A DNA stretch of 64,000 nucleotides from Thalia democratica (taxonomy: Eukaryota), in NCBI GenBank assembly GCA_965202585.1, contig OZ241826.1:15314001-15378000 (forward strand), in the 5' to 3' direction. The position numbers and the translations under genes were made by a program. Below, piece after piece: positions 738 through 60,496 of the stretch (positions are counted from its first letter, which is position 1; every line of letters starts with the position of its first letter). The notes beneath the pieces were generated by a model, which was not told where the DNA came from, made no database searches, and worked only from the letters and a program-made list of their open reading frames with translations.

Positions 738-3145
738 GTGCTTCTGTTGTGGTATCTACAGATGGCAGTGATGTGGTTGTCGGCGCAACACCTTCCGTGG
801 CTTCTTCAGTTTCTGAGGTTGTCTGATCGGATCCTGTGGTTGAGCTTGGTCCAGGTCCTGACGGCGTGGTCGTCTCAGATTTCTGTGTGGTTGAAGTCAC
901 GACGCTTCCCTGTGTCGTTTCAACTGAAACTGGCGCACCTGCTGTAGATGTTTCAGATGTCATTCCTGGTGTAGTTGTTTCCACTGATGTAGCTGTTGTT
1001 GGCGAATGTACAGGAGTTGACTCAACTAGCATGCACCTTGCGCAACACTCTCCGTCCATCTGTTTTAATTTTTGATTGAAATTGTTATTTACATAAGGAT
1101 TGTTAGGTTAAACAATCAAAAATCTAAAAGGTTAAAGTATGTTAGTTGTAAAGGTTTTCTAGTTTAGCATGTTATTTTAAACTCCCAAAAGTTTACTTTA
1201 AGTAAATTAAATTAATAAACAACAGACTCTAAGTTATCATATTCTGTTTAAATCAAATACCTTGACGGCTTTTTCATTGATGAGACAAGCTGGTGTCTTG
1301 CACTCTTTCATGTGGCATTCTGTTTTGTTGCTCATGCACATGCAGGTACCGCATCCGTCAGCTGATTCCCATATGTCTCCGTTCTGTGTAAATAATAAAG
1401 TATGTGTAATTACTTTTAACAAGTAAACTTTTAAAAAAGCTCTAGAACTTAAAAAAGTTGAATCAGTTACAATACTATATTTTAGACTTTACTTTATTTT
1501 GATTGAACTACTTATGCTTGTAAAACTAGAAGTTTACGTGCTATAAAGAAACATGTATTGTAACAATTATGAGTATAGCAGTTTTTAGATAAAATAAACA
1601 ACAAAACAAACATTGTACACTTGGTCCATGTAAACGCACGGACAGTCCTCCTCAGCCACGCAGTTGTGACCATCGTACATGGTACCGTGGGGACACGTGC
1701 ACCCCTGGTTACAGCCTTCCGTGGTTGCCACGCAACCGTCCCTCAAGTGGGGGCACATGTTTGTGCACGAGTTGGCGCAATCGTCGTATGACATCGGTGC
1801 ATCACATACACTGTGTTTGAAATACTATTGTTGAAATTTTTTGTTTTTTAATCCAATTAATTTGGGTTGATTAAGTTAGTATTCAACTGTGCATTGCAAA
1901 AATTGTATTTTGATTAGAATTTGTCAGAAATCTTTAACTTTTGAACTTTGAACATTTTAACATTGTTTTTTACTTTTAAAAAGAAAGCAATAACTAAAAA
2001 AAAACAACTAACAACTTTTATATAAGTAAACACAAAAACATTAAGTGGTTGTAGAACAGTCTGTTTTAAACTAAAGTAAACTTATACTGCAAAGCAGTTA
2101 GTTAAAGTTTCAACATTATTACGGTTACAACAGTTACCTAACAAACGTTTAACTATTTTAAACTTTTAACTTCAAGAAAAAATAAAGTTAATAATACCTG
2201 GTAGTAGTGGTTGTCTTGACAGTAGTAGCAACCTGGGCAGTTGTGCCTTGTGGAACGCAGCTGCAACAACCAGTCTCTGATTCAACTACCTTCGTTTCAC
2301 TTTCATCGCAATCACATGAAGTCTGTGAAAATATTCGGTAAATGATTATTTTTAGAAGAATTTAAAGTATTTAAGTTTAAAGCATTGTTTTCAAAGCCTT
2401 TATGTAAAAATGTTGAAAGTTGTAGTTCATTTGTAGCAATTTAAATAATTAAATCTTGACTTGTTATTGTATTATACACAAGTTATAAGTATTTTGGACA
2501 AGGTTGAAGACTTTATTTTCTAAAATGAATAATACTTAAAATTTAAATTTGAACAACTAACCTTGCAAACTTGTTGTGTGGTGCCACTGATAACACCAGT
2601 AGTAAACACATTAGCAGCAGTAGTTGAAATAAATACAGGTGAACTTGTTGTAGTGACAATCATATTCTTTGTTGTTTCGTCTGATGCTATATATATTGTT
2701 AATTGTTAAAGTTTTGTAAAAAAATAAGGCAAGTTATTTTTGGTCTAAAGTTAGACTTTCAGATTTCGATAAGCTTTGGCTTAATGAAAGTGTTAAAAAA
2801 AGTTTTTAATAATAACCTTCAGTTCTAAACTTATATGCTTTTATTACTTAATGTTGATTTTTGCTAAACATAACAAAGTTTAATTATGCATAAGCACTTT
2901 CTTTTTATTACTTTTCATTTAAAACCAAACAACTAACTTGGCACAGTGACAACAGTGGTGGTCTGTTCAGGGTCGAAGGACGGGGCAGTCGTGGTCTCGA
3001 CGACCTGTTTGGTGGTGGTGGTTTGCACGGGTAGCTTGGTTGTGGTGTCCATGACAATTTTGGACGTCGTGGTAACCACGTTGGTCGTTTTCGGCTTGGT
3101 TTCGACCACGGTGGTTATTTCAACTGCTCCACTGGATGTTTCGGT
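738..3145 (-). CDS. Distal PTS linkers with TIL and VWC modules; gene continues past the window edge
   Basis: [40 protein letters not shown]; [30 protein letters not shown]. The last exon seen ends in a phase-1 gtaagc donor at 737. Confidence 0.88.
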
Positions 3146-6100
3146 CTGATAGTGAAATTAATTAAATTTGATTAAATACTTTTTTGATTTGAAATTATTC
3201 TTTAATATGCTGTATGTAGTTTTTAAAAACCATAAAAGTTTAAAAAACAATAAAATAAAAAAATATTTAGACTATGTATGTGTTACTATTATTGAAACGA
3301 TATAATTTTTATTTTTATTTACCACCATACCAAACTTGAGTATTTTCTCATACTACAGAATCACATTTATCTACCTGCTAGATTTGTTTAAGCTTTTGTC
3401 TGTACAACTTTTGTAATCTTGTTTTTTACAAACCTCAGTTGTTGATGGAGTGGTACCCATTGTTGGGGCGGTCGTCTCATCAACGACTGCTGGTTTGCTG
3501 GTCGTCTTGGCAACGCTTCCGGTCGTTTCCGTGGTCACCACCTTGGTGGTCGTCACTACGACGCGTTGCTCGTAGCAACCGGTGACGTCAACTCTTAACG
3601 ATGGAATGACGTCATCGCTCGATGACATCACTGGGTAGACACGGATAGCAGTGACGTCATTGAGTGGTGTTGGGAACTCGATGACTGAAATCTGACTGGC
3701 ATCAGTGCTGGCTTGGAAGACCTGATAATTTAGATTGTTATGAGGGGTAAAACATCTTTTAAGCTAAGTTATGAGGGGTAAAGCTATATATTGCGGTATT
3801 TAGTTAATCAATTCAGTTTAAGCTTTTGTAGACTTTTCTAAGTAAAAAATACAAGTTTTACTGTAAAAGTTGATATGAGATATTTATACTTTTAACAACT
3901 TAATTAGGGATAAACCTACTCTGTTGTATTAATTTGTCTTAATTTGTATAAAAGTAAATCAGAAAACTATTCAGCAAGTATCGAAACAATCATATGTAAT
4001 TTTAAGACTTGTTTAGTTAAATAATAAAACTAACAGTTGAGTCGTGAGCATCAACAGCTTCAACCCAATTATCACCATTCAAATATTCGATCTTCACAAA
4101 AGAAGTCCAAGATTCAACATTCACACCTCCCTGCACCAAAACTTGCACCACGGTAACCCCCTGGTCGAACTCAACCTGCAGGTATCCTTCCGAATCCCCT
4201 GACGACGGTTGCCATGCGTCGTTGACAACGGAGCTTCTGTCGCTAGTGTCGACCGTTTTGGACATTGATGCCAGCTTGGAGTTGCTCGAAGCCGTGTAGG
4301 TGCTTTCAGGAACCGGAATTCCCCTGTACTGCGTCAGCATCATGACCTCATCGGCACAAGTCTTGACCGTGGCGGCGGTGGTCGTCATCAGCGGCGATTC
4401 GGTGGATTTCGTGGCCAATGTGGTCGTTTCAACAACTTTGGTGGTTTCCACCGTTGTCATTGGGTTTTCAGTTTCCGGTTCAGTGGGTTCTGTAGTCGTC
4501 TTGGTTTCGGTGGTTTCCACGACTTTCACGGGGCCCGTGGTTGCTACGGTGGCCGGGGTGGTTTCTACGACTACAACCTCGGTGGTGGTGGTTCCGCTAG
4601 ACGGCGTTGTTTCCGTGGAAACCGATTTCGTAGTGGTGACAATGACCGGTCCGTTTGGTGTCGTCACTACCTCCTCTGTGGTTGCTATGACGTCACCCTC
4701 TGTTGTCATGACGTCAGAGGGTTTCGAGGTGACGACGGCCGACGATGTGGTGGTTTCCGTTTCTCCCGTCTGCCGGGTGGTCGTCTCGTGACTGACCACT
4801 TCGCCCTGACTCGTCGTGGAGATTATGGTCGTTTCGGTGTAAGTTGGGGATTTTTTGGTCGTCGTCACGATTTTGACTGGTTTGCCGGTTGTGACATCTG
4901 ATGGTTTTGTAGTTTCAGATACTGATGGTGACGATGTAGTTTCAACTTCAGACTTTTCAGTAACTTCTGGTGCTGTAATAAATACAAATTTTTTTAATTG
5001 TGATGTTTTGATATCAATTTTTACAAATTTAGCTTTTCAAGTAATTATTTTAAAAGAAAATTTTAATTGGAAAAATAAATAAGTATTAAAAATTATTATC
5101 AGAGAAAAATTAGCTATTTTAAAATAGATTAACAATGGTAATACGGGTTTTTTATTAATTCTGCATATACAGTTTCTTTATTTTACCATAACCATGAATA
5201 TTTAACTTTAATTTATTTTATTAGTTTCTAGCTAACTTTCTGTTGTTGGTACGGTAGTCATGACAGACTTAACAGTAGTTTCATGTGTTGGTACTTCACT
5301 AGTAGTTTCAACAACTGTTGTTTTCTCATATGATTGAGTTGTTACTGGTGATTCAGTGCTTTCAACAACTGGTGATGGTGTAGTTTCAACTGATGTTTCA
5401 GTTGATGTAACTTTCTCATACATTGTTGTTGTGGTAACTTGACCTTCAGGAGATGTTGTTTCTACTTCAACTGGTTTGTAAGTTGTAGTTTCAACAGTCT
5501 TGCTGGTTGTAGTTGGTTCAGAAGTTTCAGTTGATTCACCAGTTGTGAATGTTTCTAAAAATAATATGTATTCTTGAAAATCTATTTACTTTCAGAGATG
5601 ATTTAATGTACAAAGCATCATTTAGCTTAAAAACTTATTTAAAACTTTAGCTTACTAGAGTTTTAAACAAAAACTAACAAAAAAATTGAAAATGAAGTAT
5701 TACCAAAAAATTTATTTTACAGTTTATGTTTTAAAAGAACATTTATATATATATATATATCCTTAAAGGTTTTAGTTTATAATTTTTTTAACCTTTAACT
5801 GTAGTTTGTACAACGACAACAGGCTCAGTTGTTGGTTCATCATTTGAAGATGTAGATGTAGGAGTTGATGTTACGACCTCCGTTGTTGTCTTTTCTACAG
5901 TTGTTGGCTCCAAAGCTGGTAAATTAAGCAATTATGAGTTCATGTGTTCGAAAATATAACATTTTAATATTACGTCGTCCAATAATTATCGCTTGTTAAA
6001 CAAAGATGAGCATATTTTTTGTACCGATAATAAACTTATTATTGTTTTGAGTTTTTTAAAATTTATTTTGTTCCGTGTGTAGTTAAAAATAAACTTTATT

Positions 6101-9100
6101 ATACATTTAGAAGCTGTTATCTAAAAATTGTGTTGTTTATTGGACAGTAAAAGAAAGTACGCGCAAAAAGTTTGGTCTAAAAATTTGGCTTAAAACTTAA
6201 CTAAGAATAAAAGACTTTTACTTTATAGACTAAGCATCATGCAGTTAGTTGAAAAAAAAACTAAAATGAATAAGAAAACAAATTCAAAAAATTTACAAAC
6301 ATAGCTTATTATTTGACTTTTAAGTGTGTATGATATCTTTCTTATGTTTTATCAGCTACTGTAATTTTTAAAACTGTTTATGTTACTTAGTCTATTAAGT
6401 ATACTATTTAACTTTGTATTAAATCTTCCAGACAATAGATGCAAGGTTTTAATTCAAGTATCTTTGAAGCAGCAAAACATATTTTCAAAAAGCCATTTAA
6501 GTCCTTAGTTTGAAATTTGAAACTGATGACAAAAATTAAATGCCTAGTAACAAAACAAAACTCTTGAATCAGCATCATAGCTGTACTATGAACAAAAATA
6601 TTGATAAAACTTAAATTAAACTGTACATTCTGTCTTTTAAATTTATATAAGTACTTAAAAATGGAAACAAATTAGTAAACAACACATTGGTGAGTGAGTT
6701 AAAATTAATTTTATCTGCATGTTTTTTTATTATAGATAAACATTTATGGTGTTTCTTTAAAATTGGTCTACAAGCTTTTATATACTTTGTTATCACTAAA
6801 TCTCCTTAAATATAATTTAATGTTTAAATACAAAAACATAGAAAAAGTTAAAATGCTATGTATTTGTATTGTACAAAGATATTTTTAAAGTTTTTTGTAA
6901 AACTATTCAGGTTTTTAACAAAAGTAATTATGGTCTTTGGTTTTGTCTACCATAAGTTTGGAATTGATAGTTTAAAATGTAGTTTTTCTTTAATTGTATT
7001 TTTTGCAATAAGTAGTTGTAATGACCATTTTAATATATTATATTTAAGTTCTTCACTTAAAGATACTATAGATTTTAGGTGTAAGTAAAAATTCAAGGTA
7101 AGAAAATAGTTAAAGTTATGAAAGTGTAAATTAAGCATATTTAATAAAGAATTAAGTTAAAAAATTAAATAGTTATACATTATAATAAAACTAGATTTCA
7201 CCTTTTTCTGTGGTTGTGTCTACAATTGGCTTTGTTGTTTTAACAATAACTTGCTTAGTTGTTTCAACTTCATATGGTGTTGTGGCTTCAGCTTTAGTTG
7301 TTAATAAAACAACTTCACCTTATAAAAGTTTAAAAAATTAAAGTATTAGTTATGTTGTTAAAAATAATATATATATATATATTTATGTTTTAAATGATTT
7401 TTTTTTCTAACACAATAAATAATATTTTAAAATCAGTGTATAATTGTAGTTTTAATAAAAAAGCAGAAGGAGAATAACTTTTATTAAGAAGAATTAATAA
7501 AATATTTGATGTTATATATTTAAGTGCTTATATTAAAAAAAGTGTTTACCTTCTGTTGTTGTAATTTTAGATGTTGATGTTGAAATTTCTGTTGTTACTT
7601 CATTGTATTTAGGTGTTGTCACTTCAGCTTCAGTAGTAGTTGATACAATTACTGGGCTTGTTGTGTTTTCTGAAACCACAGCTGGTTTAGTTGTGGTGAT
7701 AATTTCAGTAGTAGTCTTGATCTCAGTTGTTGTTTCAATGGCCTTGTAGCAACCCAACAATGCAATCTTGATTGCTGGCTCATCACCAGTCCATTCAACT
7801 GGATGTACTCTGATTGAAGTGACCAAAACTGGTTGTTTGTCAGTGAAGTAAATGCTAGACATCTGACTGTCATCTACATTAGCAGTGAAAGTGTCATCAT
7901 CATTTTCAGATGAAATTGATGTGAATTCTTCACTTGGCTCATCAGAAGAAGTGTCAAGTTTGTAGTCAACCTTGACTTTGCTGACAAATTTACCAGTGTC
8001 TTGTCCTGCACCCTTGACAGTCAATCCAAATATGTAGACTGGCTGCTCAAACTCAATTTGAACCCAAGCATCATTGTCAGATGCAATATCTTCAGTAGAT
8101 GGTGACCATGGTTTGTTAGCAATATCTTCAGGCTGGTTGCTTGATGCAGATATAGTTGGAAGTGAACTGATCTGTGAACCATAAACATTGTCAATATCCA
8201 TTGGAAGCTCACATAGTTTGTCTTCAGTAAATTCAGTTGTAGTTTCAACAGCAGGTTTTGGTGTAGTGACAGTTGATGTGTGTACAATATGCGCTGTAGT
8301 AACTGCTTCAGTTGTGGTCTTTGCTTGACTTGTCACAATTTCTGTTTATTTTTTAAATTGGTTAGTTTATTTTTGTAGATATATAAGTAATATGATTTAA
8401 ACAATTATAAATAAAAAATGTTTGTTGTTTACCTTTTTCAGTAGTTGTTTGTTCCTTCTGTGTAGTTTGTTCAATAACATTGTTAACAGTGGTTTCATGT
8501 GTTGGTACTTCACTAGTAGTTTCAACAACAGTTGTTTTCTCATATGATTGAGTTGTTACTGGTGATTCAGTGCTTTCAACAGCTGGTGATGGTGTAGTTT
8601 CAACAGATGTTTCAGTTGATGTAACTTTCTCATACATTGTTGTTGTGGTAGGTACTCCTTCAGGAGTTGTTGTTTCTACTTCAACTGGTTTGTAAGTTGT
8701 AGTTTCAACAGTCTTGCTGGTTGTAGTTGGTTCAGAAGCTTCAGTAGATTCACCAGTTGTAAATGTTTCTAAAAAATTATGACATATTAGATTCTTATCT
8801 AGATAAAAACTTTCTGCAAAACTTACCTTTTACTGTAGTTTGTACAACAACAACTGGTTTAGTTGTAGATTCTGCAGCAGAAGTTGATGAAACTGGTTTT
8901 GTTGTAACAACTTCTGTGGTTGTTTTCTCAGTGACAACAGCTGGTTCTGATATAAAATTTTTAAACATTAATATAGATATTTTAGAAAATTAGTTCTTAA
9001 ATTTTTTTTGATTAAGTGACCATTTTAAGTTTTAGTTTTAAGAAAAGAACAAGCAGAAAATTATGTAGGTAAAAATAGTTTTGTTTCTTACCAGTATTAG

Positions 9101-36100: not shown

Positions 36101-39100
36101 TTTTTTAACTAGCATATACTCAAAAACAATTTCAGAACCAACCAGTAGTTGCAGTCCCTCTTGATCCAGTTTCCGTGTCTGTATGTCTGCCCGTTGAAGT
36201 GACATGGACACTGGGTGACCTCTATGCACTTGTCCCCGTTCAGGACCTTGTTGGCAGGGCAACCGCATCCCTCGCTACACTGCGTCACTTCACATTTCAC
36301 GTTCTGATTGTCGCATGTCAGTTGGCATTCCGTGCAGTTCACCCAAACTTTGTCCTGGATTGTTTATGGGTATGAAGAAAAAAAAAAGAATTTAAATGTT
36401 ATTCTTTCTATAACTTAATGGTTTTTTTTTTGCTTTGTTATCTAATAACGGTAATGTGTATAAAAGTTTTATATAATAAATTTAGTTTTTAGTCAGTATG
36501 GTTTCAAGTGAAGATAAAATAATGTCTGAGTTTTCAAACCAAACTCCTTAAAAGTTTTAAACTTTTGCCAATTAATTTTAAAACATTAATAGAATTTGGA
36601 GCTTTACTTGAATCGTTTAATCAATAATATAATTTTAAATAAACTCACAGCACCACAGACGTTGTCTTCGGTGCACCCCTCAATCTTCCTGCACCTCCAA
36701 GCGCCTTGCTCGCACTCGCAAGTCTCGCACATCTGCTGCCTGACAGCACCAGCTTCGTACGCTCTGTTGTGATGGTAGCAAGAGCACTTTTGTGACGTCA
36801 CACACTGGTTCTGAGCGTCGTCCCAGACCTGTCCGTCCGGGCACGCGCAACCCTCGTAACAACTGCTTTCGTCGCAGTCCAGGGGAATTTTTTCTCCCGC
36901 GCTCAGCTTCTTGCACGTGGGTTCGCAGCTCCTGCTGGCGCAAGTCTTCCACTCGCGACCGTTCTCGCACGTGACCTCACAATTACTTACATTCCTCCAT
37001 GACGTCATGGCGTCATCAACGACGGGGAATCCCTGCTGAGCGCACGAGTGGGCGTATGACGTCATCACGGAGCACTTGCATTGATCTGGGTCGGCGTTGG
37101 TCTTGTGGAGGCAGTGGCACACGTCATGCTCGCACATCTTGATGAATGACGTAGGGTTGATGCGCATGTTGCACCCCTTGAACGGCGACATTCTCAATAC
37201 CTGTTATGTGTGGAAAGAATATTCTATTTATGGTGTAGATGTGGTGGTTAAAAAAGTTTAAAGGCATAAAGACTTCTGCTTTTTTTTAAATATAGATTTA
37301 TAATTATTGAAGTTGTTGAAAATAGTTGATTTAATGTTCATAAAAACACTCATATGTACTTTAAACTGAAAAACTATATATTTAGCAGCGTTATGGATTG
37401 TTACATATAAAGGAAAAACTACTTAGTCAAAGTTTTGTTTTTAAACTCTTTGTTTAAAATGTGACTTAAATTTATACATAAGTTTTATAATAAATCAAAT
37501 CTCTTTAACAAACCTCACAAACGCCAGTGGCGTACTCCTGGTAGTGAGTGGCCAGCACGCAGGCGTCCACGGCCATTCCGGTGTTGGCTATGTCGTCATC
37601 ACACGTCACTCCCGTCTTCCACGAGTTGCCGAACTCCGCTACGTTCAGCGAAGTGACCTTGTTGGGGAGGGTGAAGTCGTCCAATTGGTTCAAGTTGTAC
37701 ACTCCGCACAATCCGCTCACCTGATTGGATAACTTTTTTGTTTAAAATTTGTAATAAATTGTATACAAAATATAAAAGTTTGAGTTTTAATAGTTAAAAA
37801 ATGCCTTTCTGTAACTTTTTTCTAAGGTTTTTAACCAAGTTTATAACAGTAATAATACCTTACCGCTTTAAGAACATTAACTACTTCTATTTTAACAAGC
37901 ATAATATTATTCTTATCTTATTTTTTGTCTTATTAAACAATAAATCCAATCAACATGCATTTCATTTATTTTAAACTGTATAAACATCAATTTTTACAGA
38001 TAATAAAGCTTACGGGTTTAAGAACGGCACCGATTTTTATCTAAATAACCACAAAAATATCAGTATCAACTTTTTTTACGTCAATAAAAATTGACCAAAC
38101 CAACATGTGTTTTGAAAAAAGGATGAAGAGTCAAATACACTCTGTACTCTCCATCCCACTGAAGCTTGATCTTTCCATCAGAAGTTGACATCTCCACCAG
38201 CATTGATGAGACCAAGTCGAAAGATAGCGATGAAGATTTGTGCGGGATCAGCACTTCGTTGTTGTCTACCATCAATCGAGATTTTGAAAGCAGTCTGTTT
38301 GTAAAGTTTAGTATAAAACTAATTTAGTACAGCTACAATTAAACTTTTAAGTAATTTTTTTAGAAGTACTAAAGTGGTTCAATTATAAAAGTTTTGTCGT
38401 AACACTTTACTTAATTTCAGTTAAAAATTTTTTTCAATCTTTATTAATTCAGTTTATTGCTGAGTGGTTTTGGTCAAAAAAAATCAAACTATATTTTATT
38501 CTAAAACAGTGCATAAATATTTCAATATAAATTTGTTATACAAACTTGTACGTGTGATCTCCGTATTTGACGGTGAGCGTCTTGTGACATTTCTCCTTGT
38601 CGAAGAACCCGCACCCGGTGTTTTGTATCCACACGGCGAACGGATGATCAACTTTGTCATCTGACTGGGCCAGCACGTACTCACAACCTCCCGAAAACTG
38701 AAGAAGAAGTATTTATTATTTGAAGAGTCAATGATAGAAATATGTACTTTTTTGTACCAAACTTAGTAAAACGATTGCTTTGTTAAAAATGTCGTGGTTT
38801 TAGAATTGTTCTTGTAAAATGTTTTTTAATTATTCAGGTACAATTAATGGACACCAAAAATACAAAAGTTGTTACAAATATTACTTTACAATCCGTAAGG
38901 CTTTCAGCTTTTACTGTTGAAAGTTCTTAAAATATAACTTTCAATAACATTTTATAAATTATCAATCTAACCTGATAATTTCTGCCGTCAAAAGTTACAT
39001 AATGGTCTTCACCGATTATGGAGCAAGTGGCAGGGCACTCTTCAGTTGTGCAGGACCATCTACCGCCAACACATGTGCTGTTTAGAAGGTTATAATTTTA

Positions 39101-42100
39101 AAAAATCTTAAATTGATGATCTTAGAACTTATCAAGCTCGACTAAAAAAAAATCACCATACTAAATTACACAAATCAAGCATTAAATTTTGAATATTTTT
39201 TTATTAGCAAAAAAGCAACAACTTAAACACCTCAAAGTAGTAATAATATAGTAAGCTGTAAGATAAAATCACTGAAAACATCATTTACAAATTATTTCAG
39301 TGTACAAACCAGTTAAAATTTAGCATCATAAATAAGTTAAATCTCCAACTAAGAAAATTTTTTGAAAAAATTAACTATTGATTAATAATGCATTTTATTT
39401 ATAAACAAAGTAAAACAAAATTATCAAGTTTTATGAGTTTAAGCTAGTTAAAAAAAGATAAGTTTAATTTATACAAATTATTTCAAAAATAGTTTTTATA
39501 TTTCAGTATACAAACCAGTTATTGCAGTCTTCTTTGATAACATTACCGGTGTGGTAAACCTTACCAGCGCTCGTACATGGACAACTGTCCTGGTGGACGC
39601 ATGTGTTCGTCAGTGTGTCCAGGACAGTTCCTGTAGAGAAATTGGTGTTAACTAAAGAATGTTCTATATATTACGTAAAGTTTAACACAAAATAGAGTAT
39701 TAATTACATTGATACATGTTACTAACTTGAAACAATACATATAAAAAGTGTCTAGGATGATATTTTAAACTGTTTTTTAAACAATTGTATTTTATCAATT
39801 ATAAATAAACTTTGTTTAAATAGTTAATTAACATTATATTTTTATGTTTTACAAATTGTTTAGTTGTTACAAATATTCAGTACTACTCAATTTAGTACTA
39901 CTCAATTTCACGAATAAATAGAATAATTTTACATGTAATTATATCAAACCTGAATATTTATAAATTAAATTAATAATAACTAATAATAAATTATTAATAA
40001 TTTTTTTTTCATAGAATAATAAATTATTTTTACAAACCTGACGGGCAATGGCAACCATCAATACAAATTGAGCTCGTACACTCGCTAACTGCTTCCTTGT
40101 TATCGCAAGTTTTCGGGCAAGCTGTACTGCATTCGCTGAAAACCATACCCCCTGAGCATTGGATTCCTGTGAAATAATAATTATTTATTAGTACTACATT
40201 CCCTGACACCATACCCGCTGTAAACTCAATTCATGTGGTAAAAAAGTAAAATAACTACTGTGTTATGTGTGGTGCGTTGGTTTCATGAAATCAAACAAGT
40301 TTTTCTTTAAATATTATAAAACCTATCAATTTGAAATAAGCTCATTGACTTTATCATTTTTATTAGTCATTTTGGAATATTTTTAACAAATAATAACGTA
40401 TTTTACGGCCATAACTAAAATAAAAAGCTGTAACAAGCAAAGTATTGAAAAAAGCAAAAAAGTTTAAATTCTTGCGAAAAAGAGTGTTATCAAAAGTAAA
40501 TTGCATTTCAAGTGGTTAGTTTACGTAGTTAGGCACTTAAAAAGCTGTGAAAATTTTCTAATTTTTGCTGATCAATCATAGATAAGAATCTGTGTTGATA
40601 CAGAAAAGTACAAAGAAATTCACAAGTGCTTACAACAATAAGTAGTTGTTTTAATATACAGACATATAGCACGTACGGTAAACAATATTTGTATAAACTT
40701 TCTGTTGATAACATCTTCAAAAATTTTTTGGTTTTATTTTGATTGATTGTTTTGTTTAAAGGAATTTTTCACCTGCTTTCAATTTCAAAAGCGCATGTAA
40801 ACATTTTCTGTATAAAGGCTCAACTTGAAACTATTTTGTAACAGAGTGTTTAAAAAGAAAACCTAATTTTTGCCTAAATTTCAATCAAATACTGAATTTT
40901 ATAATATACATAAGTTTAGCTCATTAAATTAATTAAAAAAAAACTATCTCCTGAACTAAAGGCTAAAACAATATACAAAAAATATTTTATTTGTGTTATA
41001 AAAGTTTATTATGATAAACCGAACTTTATACATAAAGTTAAATCAGCGCAAAAAATTATACTTATTCGTTATAAACTTAATTACTGTCTATCTGAGAAAT
41101 TAACAAATCAAAAATATATAATTCAAACTGACCGCACAAGCTGTCTGATCTCCAGTCGAGCACGACATTTTTGAATGCACACTGCCTGGAGTAATGTGTG
41201 AACGCCTCGCATGCACACTCTTCGAAATTTTCGATTCCGCAAACACACACATCCGATATGCACCGTTGGTAGTATATCTGTTGTAAAAATAAATTTAAAA
41301 AATGTGTTGGTTAAAAATATATTCTAAAGATTTAAAATCAGTTTATTAAATCGGCAGCAAATCTATTTTGTTAATGAAAAATCAATTAAGTTGGTAACGG
41401 ATCTGGTTGAAAAAGTAATTGAGTTTTCACATAAACTTCTTAGAACGTTGGTATTTTAAAAAGAAAATAAATTTAAAAGTATTCTAATCAACGTACGATC
41501 ATAAAAATAAACATTTTAAGAAGATAATCAAGTCTTTTACAGCTTATTTAAGATAAAAAAACATTTACCATGTTACAAAAAGATTCATATTCTTAAAAAA
41601 ATACAAAAAAATTTCAAAGTTACTTTCCTAATAAGTTTGATGCAATAAAAAGTTAATAAAGTTTAGTGGTAAAGTAGAAAACTATTTAGAAACTACGTAA
41701 ATAATAAAACATTATATTTTATAAAAAATAGACAAACTTCAGGATCGATGACGGAGTGACAAGCTGCGAACTTTTCTCCCAACAAGATCTTGCAGTGATC
41801 CTCAACGGGAGAAAGTTGATACTGGGAGTAAGAGCTGCACGGATGGCTGGTTCTCTTCGGAACTTCCTTGCATTGTGACGTAACATCGAGGTTGACGTGG
41901 TAGAAGTTTCCGAACTCGTTAGCTTCAGTGAATTCCTGTGACGATTATTTTTTGCTGTTTATTTCCATTTTACTTTGAACTTTTCGAAATATTTTTGTTT
42001 CTAAAGCTTTACAGCTTTTAAGATTATTGTTTATAGTTTATTGACTTTAACTGACTCTTAAACTGAAATGTTGTTTTTTTCTTTAATGCATTTAACGTAC

Positions 42101-45100
42101 TTTTGTGTTTTTTAATAAATAAAGCGGAAAACAAATTTAAATATACTAACCTATTTTTTGTCTTAATGGTTCACTTTAGTTTTTAATGAAAGTTGTGTAA
42201 ACTTTTTTAAAGAAAAGTTTCAAATATTAAGTTGTTTTTGGTTTTGTTACTGCTTAAAAATGTTGTATGCATAAAAAGTGATGTCTAACTACTTATCACT
42301 ACAAACTCACAAAACACAAAAACCAATTTAACCTGTCCTTCGACTTGGAAGTCGTTATCTTCCTGACCATCGAAGTTACCACACATTCCCAACATGTCCC
42401 CCATGTACGAATCAGGAACCACAACGTCAACCGCCTGGTCATTGTCGAATATCACTCGTACTCCTGTTGACAATATTACATTTCAAGATTTTATTGAGCC
42501 CATAAAAAGGAATGTTTAAAGTATTCGTAATACTACTCGTACTCCTAAAATTAAAATAATACTACATTTAAAATTTAAAGCTAAAAAATTATAAACGGAT
42601 ATTCTCAAAAAAAATTATAACAAAATTTGTAAAAGCTATTACACTGTTCCATCAAAAATCATAAATGTTTTTTTACAAGCGTAAATATCTTTCAAAAATA
42701 GGTTTTTATTTTATTTTAAAGTATTACTGTTTACTTTAAGTTTTTAATAATAAACCTATCTATTTTTTTTTAAATCTACATACAAACAAATATTAAACAA
42801 ACCAGAAGCCAGTCTGACACTCGTGTATTCTCCGATCCTCTCCAGTATAATGGACTTGTCCACAGTCTTGGGCATGGTAATGAACTTCTTGTTGTGGGTG
42901 GCCGTGTTGTTGGGGTAGAGCATTATGACGTGCATGCCTGCCCCCACTTCAACTCTCACCGCCTTCCTGCACCTCTGACCTGATTCGTCACATCCGAACT
43001 TGTTGTACACCTGAAATGAAGAAATTTATTTTAGTATGTTGTAAAGTGAAATTCTTTTGATATATTATGAAATAATTTTGTGTAAAATATCTGTTAGAAT
43101 GCTTTAATATACAGTGAATACTATGAATACAGTAATGCTTAAGGTTACATTTTAATTACTTATCTATCGTTTAAATTGTTAAAGCAAACATACTTCCCAC
43201 TTTGCTAAAAACGTAACTTTTTAATTAAAACGATTTTTTAAACTCATACAGTTTATGATCTAAGAAACTATACAAGTTAGGACTAAAATTTTAGAATACT
43301 ATTCAAAAGTATTTTTTAGTAAAGTAAAAGTTTAAAAGTTCACACGAAAATCAACCAACCATGACGTGTAGGTTCCCTCCCTTCTGTATGACGAACGAGT
43401 AGGAGCACTCGCCGGGAAAGTAGTACTTCTTCCCATCAAAAGTGGTGTAGTGGTGCAACCCGTACACGGAGCAGATGGCTTCGTGCTTGGACGCCCTCAA
43501 CTGGCCCACGTCCGCCACTCCCACTTCCTCCCGGTCCTCCTCCTCCTTCTGGGAGCACGTCCTACCCGCGAACCCCTGCTTGCACATGCACACGTCCGGC
43601 ACCATGCACTGGCCCCCGTTCATGCACGGTTCCGTGCAGATGGCTGTGTGGGTGTTAGATTAAAATGCTTTTGATTTTTTGTTTATAAGTCAGCAAAAGC
43701 ATATAAAGGATGGTTAGTAATTGATTTTTGTGAATTCCTTACTTTATATGTAAAAATTCAATCATTTCTGATTTTACTTACAAAGGTTTTTATGTTACTA
43801 GGTGTTAGGCTTTTTCACTTTAAGTTTGTAATCTTATTATATACTTTATTAAACCGTATACAAGCGTTCTTATACATTTAATAGAAACAGTATACAAACC
43901 TTGTTCGCAATGGTCTCCTTTGTAACCTTCAGCGCACTCACAGGTATCCTGAGCGACACAAACACCCTTGTTCAGGCATCCACCGCAATCGAACTTGGCT
44001 GTAAATAACATTAATATTTATAGTATATTATTATATTATATATAAATATTATACTATCAAAAAGCATATTTAGTTTACAGCTAAACTTTTAATTTAGCAT
44101 GAATTTAAGCCACTTAAAAATTAACAAATCATGTGGCCTATCGAGATTGGTTTTTAAATACAGTTTTAAATTTTTCAAAATTTGTTTGTGAATGATAACA
44201 TGACGCACTTGCTAATATTTATAATGAAAAACTTAAAAGTTGTTTTGTTACTCAGAAAAAAGTTAAATGTTTGAAAGCTTTACAAATTATTTTTACAACA
44301 TACAACTATTTCAAACTTACCAGTTTCACAGTGGTCACCAGTCCAGCCATGTGGACAAGAACAAGTATTTGGTTCGGTACATTCCCCGCCATTCATACAA
44401 GAAAGTTCACAAATAGCTGTAAATATATAAGTAATTTGATGGTAATAAGGTATTTTCTTCAGTACATTCTCTACCAACAAAGAAAATAGTTAATTCAAAA
44501 AAGTTATGAAATCTGCCAAAACATAAATTCTCAGTAAGCAACGTAATTTGTACATTTTAGATAAGTAAGCAATATTTCAATACTAACGCGACTCGCAGTA
44601 CTTTCCGTTCCACTCGGCTGCACATTCACATTTGTTAGGAGAAACACATTTGCCCCCATTCTTGCATTCCTCATTACATTGAGCTGTTACAATAATGTAT
44701 GAAAAAATATCAAAAAAAATTAAACTAGTTTTAATTTTGAAAAGAGTAAAGTTGCTTGTGAAAAAGCTTCCTTTAAACTAAAAAAGCTGCATAATTTGAG
44801 TGTCAGTGAATTAGAAAGGTTAAATGTCAATTTTAAGTTTTTAAAACTAAGTCATATAGAAAAAAAATGTTAAAAATTTAGTTAAATTTTCAAGATTACT
44901 ATCAGTTTTCACAGCACACAAAAAAATAAACCTAAAATTCACATTATTGACAAAGTTTTCTAAAATGAATATTTAAGCCAAACAATTTTACAAGTATCAT
45001 AGAATTACGAACATCACAGGAGTTTACAATGCATATAGTACAACCAAGTACATAATAATATATAACAACTGTTTCAAACTCACGAACATCGCATGAATTA

Positions 45101-47333
45101 TATTTTATATGACCAAGTATATTTAGTATAGTTTAATTGAAACTCACGAGTGTCGCAGGAGTTTCCGGTGTATCCACTTCCGGTACAGTCGCACGTATCC
45201 GGTGCAACGCATCTACCTCCGTTGTTGCATTTGTTACGACACACCGCTATTATGACATAATAATAATGTTTAGTTATATTTCGGTAGTTATGAGCTCGTT
45301 ATGTCAAATAAAAAGTATGTTTTTAGTCATAAACTTATTTTTGTAAATAACATGGATATGAAAACTTTTTTTGTCAAAAGTTAATAAACTGTTAGTTGCA
45401 TTTAACTTTTTTCAAAGGGACTAATTTTCTATTCCAGTATAAAATGTTGGTTGTTTTTTTCAGTAATTTTTGCTCGATTTTAAAAATAATAAATTTTTTT
45501 TTGTATTTAAAAAAACATAATTTTGATTTTATTATAGCCAAACAAAACAAGTAAGCATCAATCAACATGTTGCCATGGTAACTAACCGGTGTTGCAGTCA
45601 CTTCCGGTCCAACCCTGACAACAAGCCTGGACTTCCTGTGGTACCGAAACCTCCTTAGTTACCAGGACTGGCACTTGCGTTGTCCTGTTGTTGCAAATAT
45701 ATATTAAAAAAGTCTATAACAAATTTGTGAAATTATTAGTTTAAGTTTTTATAATTGAAAATATAAGATAAGTAGGTTACACTTAAATGTTCTTTTAAAA
45801 AATACTTTTTACTTTATTTTTTTTACATATTCAATTTTAAAGCAGTGTTTAGAACAAAGCTTCCACACTTTTTTTTATACAGAAAAAGGTTAAAAAATTT
45901 TTATTTTATTGCTGTTTTTTAAAAAAAATTGAAGTTTACTTAAAAGTCTACAGTGAAACTAATTAAAATTTGAAAAGTATTAAAATTTTTAACAGCTCAT
46001 ATAATTTTTTAAACTTCTAGACACAAAAACTTTAGAATTTTTCATTTGAAACAATGCTTTAGTTGTGCTCAAAGTGTGTTTAGTTTCATGTTTGAAGACC
46101 CATAGTTAAAAAAAAAAAAATCAACGTAGAATGTTCCCAGCGCCTCTAGGCTTGCTTTAGCTGCCTACGTCATGATGATATTACGTCATAAATACGTCAT
46201 AATACGTGGGCAGTATAAAGAAAGCCGCCAGGCGAAATGGGTAGTTTTTTTGTTGAAATATTATTTATCGTATAAAGCGTTACTCGTCTTTTAGTCTTGA
46301 AATAATTTAAAACAAAGTCTAACATTTAAGTTTAACAAAACTTTTAAAAGTTAGACTTGAGACTTTAAGAACCATTTGTTGATTTTGATGTATATTAAAG
46401 TTAAAAAACTTAAAAAGAGATTATTTTAAACATTTCAAACATGAATATTGTAAAAAATAAGTCAACTTGTAAATTACTAAAAAAAGATTGTTTTAAAAAC
46501 CTTTAAAACTTAAAATAATAGTCATAAGTTGTTAAGAAAAACCGCTCTTCTGTTTTATACCGTGCAATTAACTGCAAATTTATCAATTGTAATAAAGTAA
46601 TTGCAAATAAACTTTAGTTTTGTTTTTGTTGCTGTTTGTTAATGTTACCTGGTGAAAGTGCAGTAAACTTCTCCGTCCTGATCGAACCTTTCGGCTATGA
46701 CGTCGTTACTAGTGACGTCATCGCAATTCTGGTACTTGAGGGTTTCGACTTGTTCCTGGAGTTCTTCGACCTGTCGTTCTTCCATGACGTTCCTTGTAAT
46801 CGGGCACCAACTAAAAAAATATAGTTTTAAAAATTTATCACAAGCTGGTGGTAAATTTATAATTGTTCGGACTTCAGTTAAAAAGTGATTTATTGAAGTT
46901 GACATAATAAAGACAGATGTTTAAAACTTATTGATGGTTTATTAAAAAAAATTGTTGTTATATTTGTTAGAAATAAAACTTTAACAGTTTTGTAAGTAAC
47001 TTTGGATTTAAGGTCGTGGTTTTAAAGTATTTGTTACTAGCTATATAAAAAGCTGCTTGAAACATTTTTAGTTTTCAAAATAAAAAGCCTGAAAACTAAA
47101 TTAAGAGTAGCTGGTTTTCTTTATAAACATTTTAGTTTTTTCAACTACAATTAAGTTTTTTTTTATAAATATAATTTTAAACCTTAAAGTTTGTTGTTTT
47201 TTTACAAAATAATTTTATTTTTTTTAATTTTTTAATAATTTTTTCAAACTCACTGATCATCGGCAACGGTCACCGCTGACAGCAGGGCGACCGAGGCGAT
47301 TATGACGTAACAACTAGACCTCAAGTCCATCAT
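738..47333 (-). CDS. Giant secreted VWD/discoidin/mucin protein (hemolectin / SCO-spondin / VWF-like superfamily), 74 exons in window, 3' end beyond left edge
   Basis: Hand-spliced exons, all GT-AG except the acceptor at 13474, with continuous frame: 47254-47333, 46649-46810, 45587-45684, 45148-45246, 44588-44683, 44321-44416, 43900-43998, 43360-43643, 42803-43010, 42333-42463, 41738-41935, 41133-41277, 40038-40166, 39516-39630, 38972-39077, 38552-38697, 38105-38294, 37514-37720, 36649-37200, 36143-36354, 35591-35822, 35175-35315, 34778-34910, 34179-34511, 33650-33884, 32584-32692, 32317-32377, 31833-32032, 31306-31516, 30876-31052, 29313-29474, 28600-28649, 28372-28422, 27957-28127, 27371-27498, 26765-26874, 26034-26381, 25547-25768, 25204-25326, 24788-25005, 23452-23646, 22832-23315, 21879-22766, 21589-21708, 20453-20785, 19352-20248, 19064-19183, 18654-18986, 17619-18452, 17295-17402, 15963-17051, 15498-15617, 15080-15415, 13615-14514, 13355-13474, 12962-13297, 11477-12382, 11186-11305, 10769-11104, 9092-9985, 8827-8946, 8433-8768, 7550-8341, 7202-7318, 5793-5915, 5237-5554, 4035-4972, 3434-3721, 2938-3145, 2562-2686, 2198-2322, 1612-1810, 1261-1383, 738-1059. 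Starts [26 protein letters not shown] (signal peptide); no stop codon reached. Confidence 0.93.
3434..4972 (-). CDS. PTS tract and discoidin domain 11 (two exons)
   Basis: [45 protein letters not shown]..| [25 protein letters not shown]. Confidence 0.88.
7550..8341 (-). CDS. Array exon A7: discoidin + PTS
   Basis: 792 nt, phase 1-1, near-identical discoidin. Confidence 0.92.
9092..9985 (-). CDS. Array exon A6: discoidin + PTS
   Basis: 894 nt, phase 1-1; HLVEW instead of HPVEW. Confidence 0.92.
10093..10629. mobile_element. Degenerate TTAA-flanked MITE, same family as 20834-21524
   Basis: Begins TTAA|GGCCAGAAAGG; ends ACCCTCTATTGACC|TTAG (reverse complement GGTCAATAGAGGGT, like the TIR of the intact copy). 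Shares the internal CAGTCAAAGT motif at a similar offset. Confidence 0.6.
11477..12382 (-). CDS. Array exon A5: discoidin + PTS
   Basis: 906 nt, phase 1-1, near-identical discoidin. Confidence 0.92.
13615..14514 (-). CDS. Array exon A4: discoidin + PTS
   Basis: 900 nt, phase 1-1, near-identical discoidin. Confidence 0.92.
15963..17051 (-). CDS. Array exon D: divergent discoidin + long PTS ending in the A-type tail
   Basis: [21 protein letters not shown]...[20 protein letters not shown]...ALRFELIGC; 1089 nt, phase 1-1. Confidence 0.9.
17619..18452 (-). CDS. Array exon A3: discoidin + PTS
   Basis: Same discoidin with a different tail; 834 nt, phase 1-1. Confidence 0.92.
19352..20248 (-). CDS. 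Array exon A2: discoidin + PTS
   Basis: Near-identical to A1; 897 nt, phase 1-1. Confidence 0.92.
20834..21524. mobile_element. Non-autonomous DNA transposon (MITE), Kolobok-like: TTAA TSD, GG..CC termini
   Basis: TTAA at 20830-33 and 21525-28. TIR GGCCATAG(G/A)GGGGT(A/C)AAAC at both ends. Internal inverted repeat (about 21032-21082 vs 21255-21312). Absent from the paralogous intron 18987-19063. Confidence 0.85.
21879..22766 (-). CDS. Array exon A1: discoidin domain flanked by PTS tracts
   Basis: [18 protein letters not shown]...[19 protein letters not shown]...[16 protein letters not shown]; 888 nt, phase 1-1. Confidence 0.92.
22832..26381 (-). CDS. Discoidin (FA58C) domains 1 and 2 with Thr-rich linkers
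   Basis: [21 protein letters not shown]...[19 protein letters not shown]...MRLEFYGC; [38 protein letters not shown]...QTAVKGC. Confidence 0.9.
24505..24810. repeat. ~92-bp tandem repeat that copies the 3' end and donor of exon 40
   Basis: ACCTGTATGTACTGTCnGGGAGTG at about 24602, 24694 and 24786; degenerate fourth copy at about 24505. Confidence 0.85.
26765..32692 (-). CDS. TIL/VWC-type Cys-rich modules, short Thr-rich linkers and one LDL-receptor class A repeat
   Basis: [16 protein letters not shown]; [15 protein letters not shown]; [16 protein letters not shown]; [15 protein letters not shown]; LDLa: [36 protein letters not shown] (27957-28127); [15 protein letters not shown]. Confidence 0.85.
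27470..27715. repeat. ~106-bp local duplication of the acceptor and 5' end of exon 35
   Basis: TTTGCATTCACTTTCCAACCAAGRTTCACCGCTCTG at about 27466-27501 and 27572-27607; weaker third copy near 27685-27712. Confidence 0.8.
30370..30441 (+). tRNA. tRNA-Ala(TGC), intronic and antisense to the giant gene
   Basis: GGGGACGTAGCTCAGTGGTAGAGC-G-CAAGC TT TGC AT GTTTG-AGGCC-CCGGG TTCGATC CCCGG-CGTCTCC-A; cloverleaf intact, followed by a T-run terminator. Confidence 0.95.
32689..32790. repeat. 32-34 bp triplication of the exon 26 acceptor
   Basis: TGAGCTGTTGAAATGACAATAAGAT, TGAGCTGTTGAAACGACAATAAGAT, TGAGCTGTCAACATGACAATAAGAT. Confidence 0.85.
33650..35822 (-). CDS. VWD3-C8-TIL assembly
   Basis: [25 protein letters not shown]; [17 protein letters not shown]; [19 protein letters not shown]; [14 protein letters not shown]. 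Confidence 0.93.
36143..39077 (-). CDS. VWD2-C8-TIL-TIL assembly
   Basis: [25 protein letters not shown]; [16 protein letters not shown]; [15 protein letters not shown]; [10 protein letters not shown]; [18 protein letters not shown]. Confidence 0.92.
39516..43480 (-). CDS. VWD1-C8-TIL assembly
   Basis: [26 protein letters not shown]; [15 protein letters not shown]; [19 protein letters not shown]; [18 protein letters not shown]. Confidence 0.92.
43545..45246 (-). CDS. Five tandem EGF-like domains (exons 4-8)
   Basis: [31 protein letters not shown]; [29 protein letters not shown]; [29 protein letters not shown]; [29 protein letters not shown]; [29 protein letters not shown]. The first four are each on a 96-99 nt phase-1 exon. 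Confidence 0.93.
45587..47333 (-). CDS. Exons 1-3: signal peptide and EMI domain
   Basis: HWCPITRNV...YQNC...YCTFTR...[13 protein letters not shown] matches the EMI pattern (W-C near the start, CC-x-GW-x-G-x-x-C at the end) known from EMILIN/multimerin/SCO-spondin. Confidence 0.8.
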
Positions 47334-52852: not shown

Positions 52853-52925
52853 GGTTCCATAGTGTAGCGGTTATCACGTCTGCTTTACACGCAAAAGGTC
52901 GCAGGTTCGAGCCCCGCTGGAACCT
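52853..52925 (+). tRNA. tRNA-Val(TAC), mismatched copy (possibly non-functional)
   Basis: GGTTCCATAGTGTAGCGGTTATCACGTCTGCTTTACACGCAAAAGGTCGCAGGTTCGAGCCCCGCTGGAACCT. C:A mismatch in the anticodon stem and A:C mismatch in the T stem relative to the 60424 copy. Confidence 0.8.
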
Positions 52926-53264
52926 TTTGTAAAAAGAAACTTTAAGATTATCTTCTACACATTTGTAATACATCAATTAGTATTTAAGATTGATACCTAG
53001 TTGATACCAAAAACTAAATTTTTATTTGAATAGGGTAATTGGTTCTGTGAAAGCTGTTAATTTTCTTTAAAATTTATTTACTTTGAACATAATTTTAAAT
53101 CTACTAACAAGCCATAGTTTGTTACTTTATTGCACAATACTAACTTATGTTATCAACTTTAAAACGCTATGTTTTTCTTTTGTTTAAAAAAATTAGTAAA
53201 TATATCACTTACAATAATAAAATCACACCGGAACAAACAAAAAATATGTTCTCATTAGAATTTA

Positions 53265-60001: not shown

Positions 60002-60074
60002 TGTTCTGTAGTGTAGCGGTCATCACGTTCGCACAGCAGGCGAAAAGTCTCCGGTTCGAGCCCGGGCGAAAAAA
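60002..60074 (+). pseudogene. tRNA-Val-derived pseudogene
   Basis: TGTTCTGTAGTGTAGCGGTCATCACGTTCGC-ACAGCAG-GCGAAAAGTCTCCGGTTCGAGCCCGGG; A and B boxes retained, acceptor stem broken, anticodon loop lacks U33. Confidence 0.75.
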
Positions 60075-60423
60075 CTTTTAAGCAGAAAATTTAAAAATTC
60101 TGCTGTTCAAATTGTTGAATGAAAATTCCAAGGTAAATTATCAAAATTATTGTTTAATTATCTATATATATTGTTAAAGGTATATCATTTAATAGATATA
60201 AAATAAAAACCTTACTCAAGAAAGTCGCAAGAAAGCAATAGCATTTTATAAACAAAACATATTTTTTAAACTTAATAACAAACAAAAAACTACTTGCACA
60301 ACATATTTTAAATACATTTAAGTTTATATTATTGAAAAAAATATATAGGACTAAAGACTGCATAAAACTTTACAAGCTCTACTTAAAACGATATTAATTC
60401 GAATAAAACCTTAGTTATCAAAA

Positions 60424-60496
60424 AGGTTCCAGCGGGGCTCGAACCCGCGACCTTCTGCGTGTAAAGCAGACGTGATAACCGCTACACTATGGAACC
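60424..60496 (-). tRNA. tRNA-Val(TAC)
   Basis: GGTTCCATAGTGTAGCGGTTATCACGTCTGCTTTACACGCAGAAGGTCGCGGGTTCGAGCCCCGCTGGAACCT; acceptor, anticodon and T stems fully paired; position 73 is T, followed by a T-run. Confidence 0.9.

Follow-up and report, generated by a model that had tools for sequence, protein, structure and literature searches.

A 64,000-nucleotide stretch of the Thalia democratica genome (assembly GCA_965202585.1, contig OZ241826.1, positions 15,314,001 to 15,378,000; hereafter the window, with coordinates counted from its first nucleotide) carries the greater part of a giant gene on its minus strand. The window DNA is AT-rich and eukaryotic, and all long open frames of the giant gene lie on that strand. 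Same-strand Cys-rich and Thr-rich open frames run on past the window start, within the adjoining 30 kb upstream, down to a CTCK-like end. In our model, the gene spans ~65 kb, from a start ATG at 47333 to a stop codon at window position −17583 (contig position 15296417), 17.6 kb past the window start, and comprises 110 exons in a phase-consistent chain, with 109 introns that are all GT..AG and have a median length of 275 nt. The model protein is 9,197 aa long (~985 kDa, isoelectric point (pI) 4.3, 479 Cys, 18% Thr). An initial annotation of the window had proposed at least 6,790 aa between 47333 and 738; both ends agree with our model, 738 being the 3′ end of the last exon inside the window, but the in-window part amounts to 6,759 aa of a considerably longer chain. 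We read the locus as a single gene for a secreted glycoprotein of ~9,200 aa, belonging to the VWD-C8-TIL/cystine-knot superfamily and forming a sticky extracellular mesh or gel, and we put the probability of this reading at roughly 70%.

The gene model is our own prediction, in which single small exons may be wrong. Exons were chained by dynamic programming using codon log-odds and splice-site weight matrices, with only GT..AG introns allowed and with phase bookkeeping; the procedure was retrained once, and the exon penalty was raised until the tiny ‘free-rider’ micro-exons of the first models disappeared.

From N- to C-terminus, the predicted chain consists of a signal peptide, a weak EMI domain, five EGF domains, three VWD-C8-TIL assemblies, a TIL/VWC region, an LDLa domain and 11 F5/8-type-C (FA58C, discoidin) domains, followed by repeats of the form Pro/Thr/Ser-rich (PTS) tract-TIL-VWC with two more LDLa domains and, finally, a CTCK. 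The non-discoidin exons in the window with a Pfam match were to VWD (seven exons), TIL (six), EGF (five), C8 (four), VWC (four) and Ldl_recept_a (one), and those beyond it to VWC (six), LDLa (three, making up two domains, one of them split), TIL (two) and Cys_knot (two); a scan of the open frames at 27798-43659 likewise gave VWD, C8, TIL, EGF and one LDLa. Pfam and a jackhmmer self-search bear out the initial annotation on the five EGF domains, three VWD assemblies, 11 discoidins and single in-window LDLa, and domain scans agree with its general picture of a secreted protein of very large size, assembled from modules typical of SCO-spondin, hemolectin and gel-forming mucins, with discoidins set on Thr-rich spacers. 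It had also reported no TSP1 or VWA modules; neither TSP_1 nor VWA was among the families returned by any Pfam scan of the exons, and the thrombospondin-repeat motif WxxW...CSxTCG is absent from all 9,197 aa, with the same regular expression finding 4-11 copies in the SCO-spondins (SSPO) of Ciona, Styela and fish.

The coding part of exon 1 (47254..47333, minus strand, as are all exons below) supplies the start codon and a predicted signal peptide, read by eye as a charged N-region, a hydrophobic core and small residues ahead of the predicted cut. Exons 2 and 3 (45587..46810) gave no Pfam EMI match when scanned singly; joined, their 92 aa match EMI over profile positions 2-69 of 69. Five EGF-like domains follow, each on a phase-1 exon of its own (exons 4-7 plus the beginning of exon 8; 43540..45246; Pfam EGF, EGF_2 or hEGF). 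The D1 assembly, VWD1-C8-TIL-E (exons 8-14; 39516..43540; Pfam VWD, C8 and TIL), aligns colinearly with Ciona, amphioxus and other D1-D3 proteins. D2, VWD2-C8-TIL plus TIL′/E′ (exons 15-20; 36143..39077), has its VWD start motif at model aa 669 and matches Pfam C8 (2e-14) and TIL (5e-9) at 36607-37203. D3 (exons 21-25; 33650..35822) contains VWD3, with GDPH and CGLCG motifs, C8-3 and TIL-3 (Pfam VWD 7e-16 and 7e-14, C8 4e-21, TIL 5e-12), and the best match of its C8-3 exon is the third C8 of MUC2, that of D3 (105 bits). Together, the D assemblies match PDB chains of MUC2, VWF and MUC5 and are colinear over ~1,200 aa with many superfamily members. GDPH occurs only at the VWD3 start (35740-35751; model aa 1130-1133); in MUC2, MUC5AC and FCGBP this motif self-cleaves at Asp-Pro. 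After D3 come a short PTS tract and a TIL-VWC-TIL-VWC series (exons 26-30 and 32; 29313..32692; Pfam TIL and VWC), then, within 26765..28649, two small PTS exons, the sole in-window LDLa (27957-28127; Pfam Ldl_recept_a 9.5e-7 / 6.9e-8) and a further VWC (26765-27498; Pfam).

By self-search, the spliced model contains 11 discoidin domains and no more (E 3e-40 to 1e-89), and Pfam F5_F8_type_C matches large open frames across 4020-26394 (E 1.6e-5 to 1e-14). All 11 are acidic (pI 4.0-4.8), and the sequence hallmarks of the fold are kept (W, QG, GN-D, R-P and GC positions, and a Cys at each end). They fall into five sequence types, with 7 of the 11 being 90-97% identical copies of one amplified type and the other four (numbers 1, 2, 6 and 11) being divergent, at 21-34% identity to the others. 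Among the divergent copies, discoidin 1 is encoded by two exons (25623..26376; Pfam 2e-10, self-search E 1e-62) and discoidin 2 by three (23196..24868; self-search E 3e-40, the middle exon alone reaching 17 bits and E 0.005 in Pfam); discoidin 6 (16525..17295; Pfam 1.1e-14) is very acidic, with 42 Asp+Glu, and is covered by RNA contigs that include the spliced joint 17051/17295; and discoidin 11 again has two exons (3539..4274; Pfam 1.6e-5, with the first exon alone below cutoff; self-search E 3e-44). The 1.1-kb intron that splits discoidin 2 holds a 92-nt tandem repeat (24590-24809; 2.4 copies, 89% matches). The amplified type comprises discoidins 3 (22156..22587; Pfam 2.7e-8, also found by self-search), 4 (19626..20057; 3.9e-8) and 5 (17830..18261; 7e-8), the last two covered by RNA contigs, together with 7 (13889..14320; 3.5e-8), 8 (11766..12191; 3.6e-8), 9 (9363..9794; 4.7e-7) and 10 (7722..8153; 1.8e-8). 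An AlphaFold model of discoidin 3, as representative of this type, was matched by Foldseek (E 3e-8 to 7e-7) to neuropilin b1/b2, FVIII C2, CASPR2, retinoschisin and DDR2.

Gene model and spliced RNA joints together delimit a cassette region (5237..22766) of 24 consecutive phase-1/phase-1 exons, in which discoidin+PTS exons of ~800-1090 nt alternate with PTS exons of ~120 and 336 nt. Cassette exons are 92-97% identical between copies, with a synonymous divergence (dS) of 0.06-0.33 and a ratio of non-synonymous to synonymous divergence (dN/dS) of 0.2-0.6 in discoidin and PTS exons, while the introns between copies are mostly ~45-68% alignable, one pair being 94% identical (21709-21878 vs 19184-19351). 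As dN/dS is 0.2-0.6 and the introns are poorly alignable, the copies appear to be under purifying selection or exon-biased homogenisation, and the exon/intron contrast suggests either such homogenisation or very fast intron turnover. A merely very recent duplication, or an assembly artefact, is ruled out by dN/dS and intron divergence.

Beyond the array, the last in-window exons (738..3145) encode PTS tracts, a small Cys-rich exon, a TIL (1612-1810) and a VWC with PTS (738-1383), with TIL and VWC called by Pfam. The C-terminal third as a whole is a series of PTS-TIL-like-VWC units with two LDLa domains, ending in a VWC and the CTCK, which has 11 Cys and whose two exons, the last of the gene, both match Pfam Cys_knot (best E 1.3e-6). 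Along the protein, 22 tracts are free of Cys and consist of T+S+P to at least 45%; together they amount to ~3,900 aa, or ~42% of the chain.

No RNA run is recorded for Thalia democratica itself, and a search of RNA runs with 22800-28200 gave no match. A search with one long exon led to three marine metatranscriptome runs (two samples, one study) that contain part of a discoidin exon, and transcription was assessed with their contigs, mapped on 15050-20800. These contigs cover exons, with intron bins at or near zero, and contain four spliced joints exactly at predicted introns (15415/15498, 15617/15963, 17051/17295 and 19183/19352), all with CT..AC ends, that is, GT..AG on the minus strand. Joint 17051/17295 was present in all three runs, and a fifth intron, 17402/17619, was seen in one contig with an offset of a few bases. 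The discoidin cassette is therefore transcribed and spliced as modelled. The contigs also include GT..AG joints across which 3.6-3.7 kb are skipped (15415/19064 and 15617/19352), plus joints that ‘go back’; these are most simply explained by mapping ambiguity among near-identical exons and were not counted as exon skipping, but whole cassettes skipped in frame, or wild populations differing in copy number, may also account for them. An exhaustive protein search with the C8-TIL exon returned no annotated protein of the same species, only metagenome fragments of 184-212 aa (a representative being 96% identical), and when a discoidin exon was used in a word-indexed search of proteins, a single distant fish protein was the only match.

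One candidate exon of the model, exon 31 at 30268-30441, was dropped; it is antisense to a tRNA-Ala(TGC) gene identified by ARAGORN on the opposite strand (30370-30442, plus strand), inside an intron of the giant gene, and is phase-symmetric, leaving the frame unaffected. The antisense of this tRNA gene reads as an open frame of 58 codons, rich in Cys and provided with usable splice sites, which had misled the model. Three further tRNA genes lie upstream of the giant gene, Val-TAC (52852-52926, plus strand), Ala-AGC (60002-60075, plus strand) and Val-TAC (60423-60497, minus strand), two of them in mirrored orientation. The donor sites of 105 confident exons favour GT(T/A)AGT, with T slightly more frequent than A at +3, an unusual preference, as GTRAGT is the consensus common among animals.

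The closest counterpart of the gene was found in Ciona intestinalis (AP043585.1:66767-114590), where three models of 740, 1328 and 6627 aa lie next to each other on one strand. A tblastn search of our model on this locus gave colinear matches to the EGFs, D1, D2, D3 and TIL/VWC, then an 18-kb matchless stretch, an LDLa-like stretch and discoidins; EMI was not detected in the locus. The middle model, LOC144750507 (P0198), aligns colinearly with model aa 860-2101 at 46% identity and contains, in one model, VWD3/C8/TIL/VWC together with the first discoidin and PTS repeats, and the first large open reading frame of the 6627-aa model encodes two discoidins and then PTS repeats. Discoidin matches at the locus number at least four, a count that covers only the first 6 kb of the 6627-aa model. 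The first split looks like an annotation artefact, because the break falls within a C8 domain and the middle model is flagged partial, and we read the locus as probably one mis-split gene of ~8,700 aa, the orthologue of the Thalia democratica gene. Since P0198 joins VWD3/C8/TIL/VWC to the first discoidin, it is also unlikely that the VWD part and the discoidin array are separate transcripts. A one-piece Ciona paralogue, XP_026695015.1 (1810 aa), aligns to both ends of our model, at 42% in D1-D3 and 35% in the CTCK region.

We placed the protein in its family with two maximum-likelihood trees, one of D1-D3 (41 rows) and one of D′D3 (26 rows). It pairs with Ciona savignyi H2ZP85 in the D1-D3 tree (96% support) and with P0198 in the D′D3 tree (99% by the Shimodaira–Hasegawa-like approximate likelihood ratio test (SH-aLRT); 65% identity over 417 columns); nearest to the pair are the Ciona ‘SCO-spondin-like’ paralogue and an amphioxus ‘mucin-6-like’ protein. 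The wider clade (99% support) holds echinoderm ‘mucin-2-like/VWF-like’ proteins and a Macrostomum protein. The echinoderm members tested have D1-D3 and long low-complexity centres, and discoidin or lectin domains are absent from them. The SSPO of fish, Ciona and Styela make up a clade of their own (100% and 94-98% support), apart from the Thalia protein; hemocytins of Limulus, Strigamia and Biomphalaria group with a lamprey mucin-5AC-like protein in another (99% support; Priapulus is not in the tree); and vertebrate MUC2/MUC5B form a further separate clade. This VWD phylogeny, which the initial annotation had named as a check, sets the protein outside the SSPO, hemocytin and MUC2/5 clades. Judged by its sequence, the gene is a member, in an unnamed clade, of the VWD-C8-TIL/cystine-knot superfamily that includes gel-forming mucins, VWF, SCO-spondin, hemocytin and otogelin. 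The discoidin array appears to be a tunicate-level addition, because the echinoderm and amphioxus members of the clade are without discoidins. The arrays of hemocytins and of the lamprey mucin appear to parallel the tunicate array rather than to be positionally homologous to it; since Limulus and Strigamia hemocytins form a separate clade, their discoidins and those of the tunicate protein were probably acquired independently.

Several observations weigh against reading the locus as a single gene for a mesh-forming polymer. In alignments with frog MUC5B and with MUC2 and VWF chains of solved structure, D3 has no equivalents of MUC2 C1088/C1130 or VWF C1142 (His, Tyr or no residue stands there), as is also the case in SCO-spondins and in the protein’s own clade; CGLCG is found only in VWD3 (aa 1258), with D1 and D2 having no CGLC; and head-to-head polymerisation is thus unproven. 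A furin site (R-x-K/R-R) was found nowhere in the whole protein. With the D3 cysteines, the D1/D2 CGLC and the furin site all absent, tail-to-tail dimerisation via the CTCK would be the only classical polymerising feature kept. The EMI domain of the initial annotation, although matched over its full length, scores 18.4 bits (E 0.004) against a 25-bit cutoff, and the AlphaFold model of discoidin 3 is of moderate confidence (predicted local distance difference test (pLDDT) score 68, falling below 50 in the spike-bearing N-terminal part). The Ciona annotation does divide the orthologous locus into three models, and the Thalia RNA contigs are confined to the discoidin cassette, linking it neither to the VWD part nor past the window start, so that a single transcript is our reading of the locus rather than something seen.

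If the locus is one gene, a mechanism can be proposed in which the signal peptide directs the chain into the secretory pathway and the 11-Cys cystine knot links two chains by their tails. At the N-terminal end, the EMI/EGF/D1-D3 heads would associate, probably not by VWF/MUC2-type D3 disulfides, since those cysteines are absent, as in SCO-spondin. The ~3,900 residues of Thr/Ser/Pro tracts would be O-glycosylated, giving stiff, hydrated spacers that set the 11 acidic discoidins ~150-450 residues apart (~300 between amplified copies), and the discoidins might in turn bind glycans, lipids or further matrix components multivalently. Such chains would make up a sticky mesh or gel outside the cell.

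Other accounts of the same locus have to be set against the single-gene reading. That it comprises two or three separate genes (an N-terminal EGF/VWD gene, a discoidin-mucin and a C-terminal TIL/VWC/CTCK gene), with the continuous frame a by-product of symmetric exons, would fit the three adjacent NCBI models in Ciona, the restriction of RNA support to the cassette and the 39 exons of phase 1/1, across which a frame is easily kept by chance. We think this improbable: the first Ciona break lies inside a C8 domain beside a partial model, P0198 itself links VWD3/C8/TIL/VWC to a discoidin, there is only one signal peptide and one CTCK across 65 kb, phases also agree across all non-symmetric exons, and the single-piece paralogue XP_026695015.1 has both a D1-D3 head and a CTCK tail. 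If the gene is single, it could be Thalia’s SCO-spondin, the Reissner’s-fibre protein, having lost its thrombospondin type-1 repeats (TSRs) and gained discoidins and PTS. The module order is that of SCO-spondin (EMI-like, three VWD, LDLa, FA58C, TIL repeats, VWC, CTCK), D3 is without the mucin/VWF intermolecular cysteines exactly as in SSPO, and relatives are often named ‘SCO-spondin-like’ in databases. However, the protein has no TSP1 repeats, SSPO of fish, Ciona and Styela lie in a separate, well-supported clade in both trees, and Ciona has a true SCO-spondin with TSRs (P0064) as well as the orthologue of our gene; the Thalia genome, moreover, has a TSR/TIL-rich locus elsewhere, so that this identity is very improbable. 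That locus, on the same contig (23226232-23279093, plus strand), is a 53-kb array in which ~38 stretches the size of exons match the TSR/TIL part of Ciona SCO-spondin; VWD, EMI and CTCK were found neither within 56 kb upstream nor within 30 kb downstream, and it may be part of the true SCO-spondin or of another TSR giant. A third account, a hemocytin/hemolectin-type clotting or hemocyte-aggregation factor, draws on domain content, as hemocytin-like proteins pair VWD assemblies with 2-7 discoidins and a CTCK. Hemocytin discoidin domains act as lectins. We nevertheless regard this account as improbable, given that the Limulus and Strigamia proteins fall with the lamprey mucin-5AC-like protein in a different clade, that the five VWD and the Mucin2_WxxW of hemocytins are absent here (only three VWD start motifs are present, and none of the exon sets gave Mucin2_WxxW in its Pfam results) and that a PTS content of 42% is mucin-like rather than clot-like.

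With the gene taken as a single superfamily member, its likely role is that of a secreted sticky gel or mesh, and as to its use our leading guess ranks feeding mucus first and an adhesive secretion second. We tentatively propose that it could be the main structural, particle-capturing polymer of the pelagic-tunicate mucous feeding filter, a tunicate-wide, unnamed ‘discoidin-mucin’ in which evenly spaced, lectin-like discoidins, carried on glycosylated stalks, set stickiness and perhaps mesh geometry; in this specific form the proposal has a low probability. In Oikopleura, lectins, a VWF-like gene and ‘sco-spondin’ are all strongly expressed by endostyle cells (preprint 10.64898/2026.03.31.715263). 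Two Ciona genes, CiVWFL1 and CiVWFL2, are specific to the endostyle (PMC8462739), and a third, KY.Chr8.306, which among vertebrate proteins hits SCO-spondin best, is specific to the siphon and not to the endostyle (PMC8462739 supplement); none of the three could be mapped to the Ciona orthologue, transcript-length estimates from ratios of reads to transcripts per million (TPM) being too rough for a match. The same molecule could instead serve as a marine bioadhesive or cohesive protein, attaching the animal or gluing tissues or zooids, like Sfp1, nectin and Mlig-ap. The mix of EGF, VWD/C8/TIL and discoidin has been described as recurrent in marine adhesive proteins, including temporary adhesives, and nectin consists of six tandem discoidins (PMC10057474); Mlig-ap1 and Mlig-ap2 are giants of 5,407 and 14,794 aa whose long central repeats accompany VWD/TIL/LDLa/EGF (PMC6410801); the clade of our gene includes Macrostomum, sea-star and sea-urchin proteins; and the siphon expression of KY.Chr8.306 would point the same way if that gene were the Ciona orthologue. 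Yet the echinoderm clade members tested carry no discoidin or lectin domains, the Macrostomum relative need not be Mlig-ap1 or Mlig-ap2, and the transcripts occur in marine plankton metatranscriptomes, a pelagic animal having a less obvious need of substrate adhesion. An adhesive function is therefore possible but unlikely.

The initial annotation had held that no protein was known with this combination of domains or with this discoidin count. For the combination this is not supported: the colinear Ciona intestinalis locus has EGF, three D assemblies, TIL/VWC, discoidins and PTS repeats, and VWD proteins with many discoidins occur in Priapulus (7), lamprey (4), Limulus (3-4) and Strigamia (4). 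Its suggestion of a lineage-specific polymer holds for the amplification of one cassette but not for the architecture, which is common to Ciona. A search of the literature found no description of the gene or of the orthologous Ciona locus. The architecture is thus unusual within a well-known superfamily and shared with Ciona, not categorically new. Much of the particle matter in the ocean, a large share of it, is moved by tunicate feeding nets and other secreted gels, whose protein make-up is almost unknown; the gene offers a concrete, expressed candidate, a polymer-type protein of megadalton size in which a mucin scaffold is combined with a binding-domain array and which a planktonic tunicate has in common with Ciona. 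It also indicates that VWD scaffolds gained discoidin arrays more than once (in the protein described here, in hemocytins and in the lamprey mucin), and that the current Ciona annotation breaks a ~8,700-aa gene in three. Its natural ‘beads on a glycosylated string’ design could inform adhesive and mucus work. If it does build the feeding filter, the protein chemistry of tunicate filter feeding becomes directly testable, also in Ciona; if it is a minor matrix protein, it is just another lineage-expanded member of a well-known superfamily.

Among known systems, the nearest relative is LOC144750507 with its flanking models in Ciona intestinalis, which is colinear, with discoidins followed by PTS repeats, and of similar size (8,695 aa in sum vs 9,197 aa here), but is annotated as three uncharacterised genes with the 18-kb matchless stretch inside. 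The Branchiostoma ‘mucin-6-like’ protein (P0180, 2051 aa) belongs to the same clade and aligns at 42% from residue 10 to 1770 (signal peptide, EGFs, D1-D3, TIL/VWC); P0180 and XP_026695015.1 differ from the Thalia protein in being short gene models without the discoidin array, LDLa or long PTS region. Ci-GFM1 of the Ciona gut is a different, chitin-binding gel-forming mucin (PMC6109156). Like the Thalia protein, SCO-spondin is giant and secreted and combines three VWD assemblies with LDLa, FA58C, repeated TIL, VWC and CTCK modules and a D3 without mucin-type intermolecular cysteines; to its N-terminal EMI there corresponds, in the Thalia protein, the sub-threshold EMI-like match. It has ~25 thrombospondin type-1 repeats, ~10 clustered LDLa and 1-2 FA58C, whereas the Thalia protein has no TSRs, three scattered LDLa, 11 FA58C, five EGF and 42% PTS, and sits in a separate clade.

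Hemocytin/hemolectin has in common with the Thalia protein its VWD/C8/TIL assemblies, several mid-chain discoidins (seven in the Priapulus hemocytin-like XP_014665852.1, 4749 aa; 3-4 in Limulus; four in Strigamia, as in the lamprey mucin-5AC-like protein) and CTCK, but differs in having five VWD and Mucin2_WxxW (CysD), with no EMI/EGF head, LDLa or long PTS spacers between discoidins. MUC2, MUC5AC, MUC5B and VWF share with it the D1-D2-D′D3 head, a long PTS centre (in the Thalia protein predicted to be O-glycosylated), VWC and the CTCK tail; the Thalia protein is without their D4 and CysD and carries discoidins, EGF and LDLa instead. The marine adhesive proteins nectin (sea urchin), Sfp1 (sea star) and Mlig-ap1/2 (flatworm) are likened to it by domain content: they are secreted, Cys-rich, glycosylated giants with EGF, VWD/C8/TIL, LDLa, lectin/discoidin modules and long central repeats (PMC10057474, PMC6410801), but nectin is without VWD, Mlig-ap1 is extremely basic whereas the Thalia protein is acidic, and Mlig-ap2 ends in TSP1 repeats.

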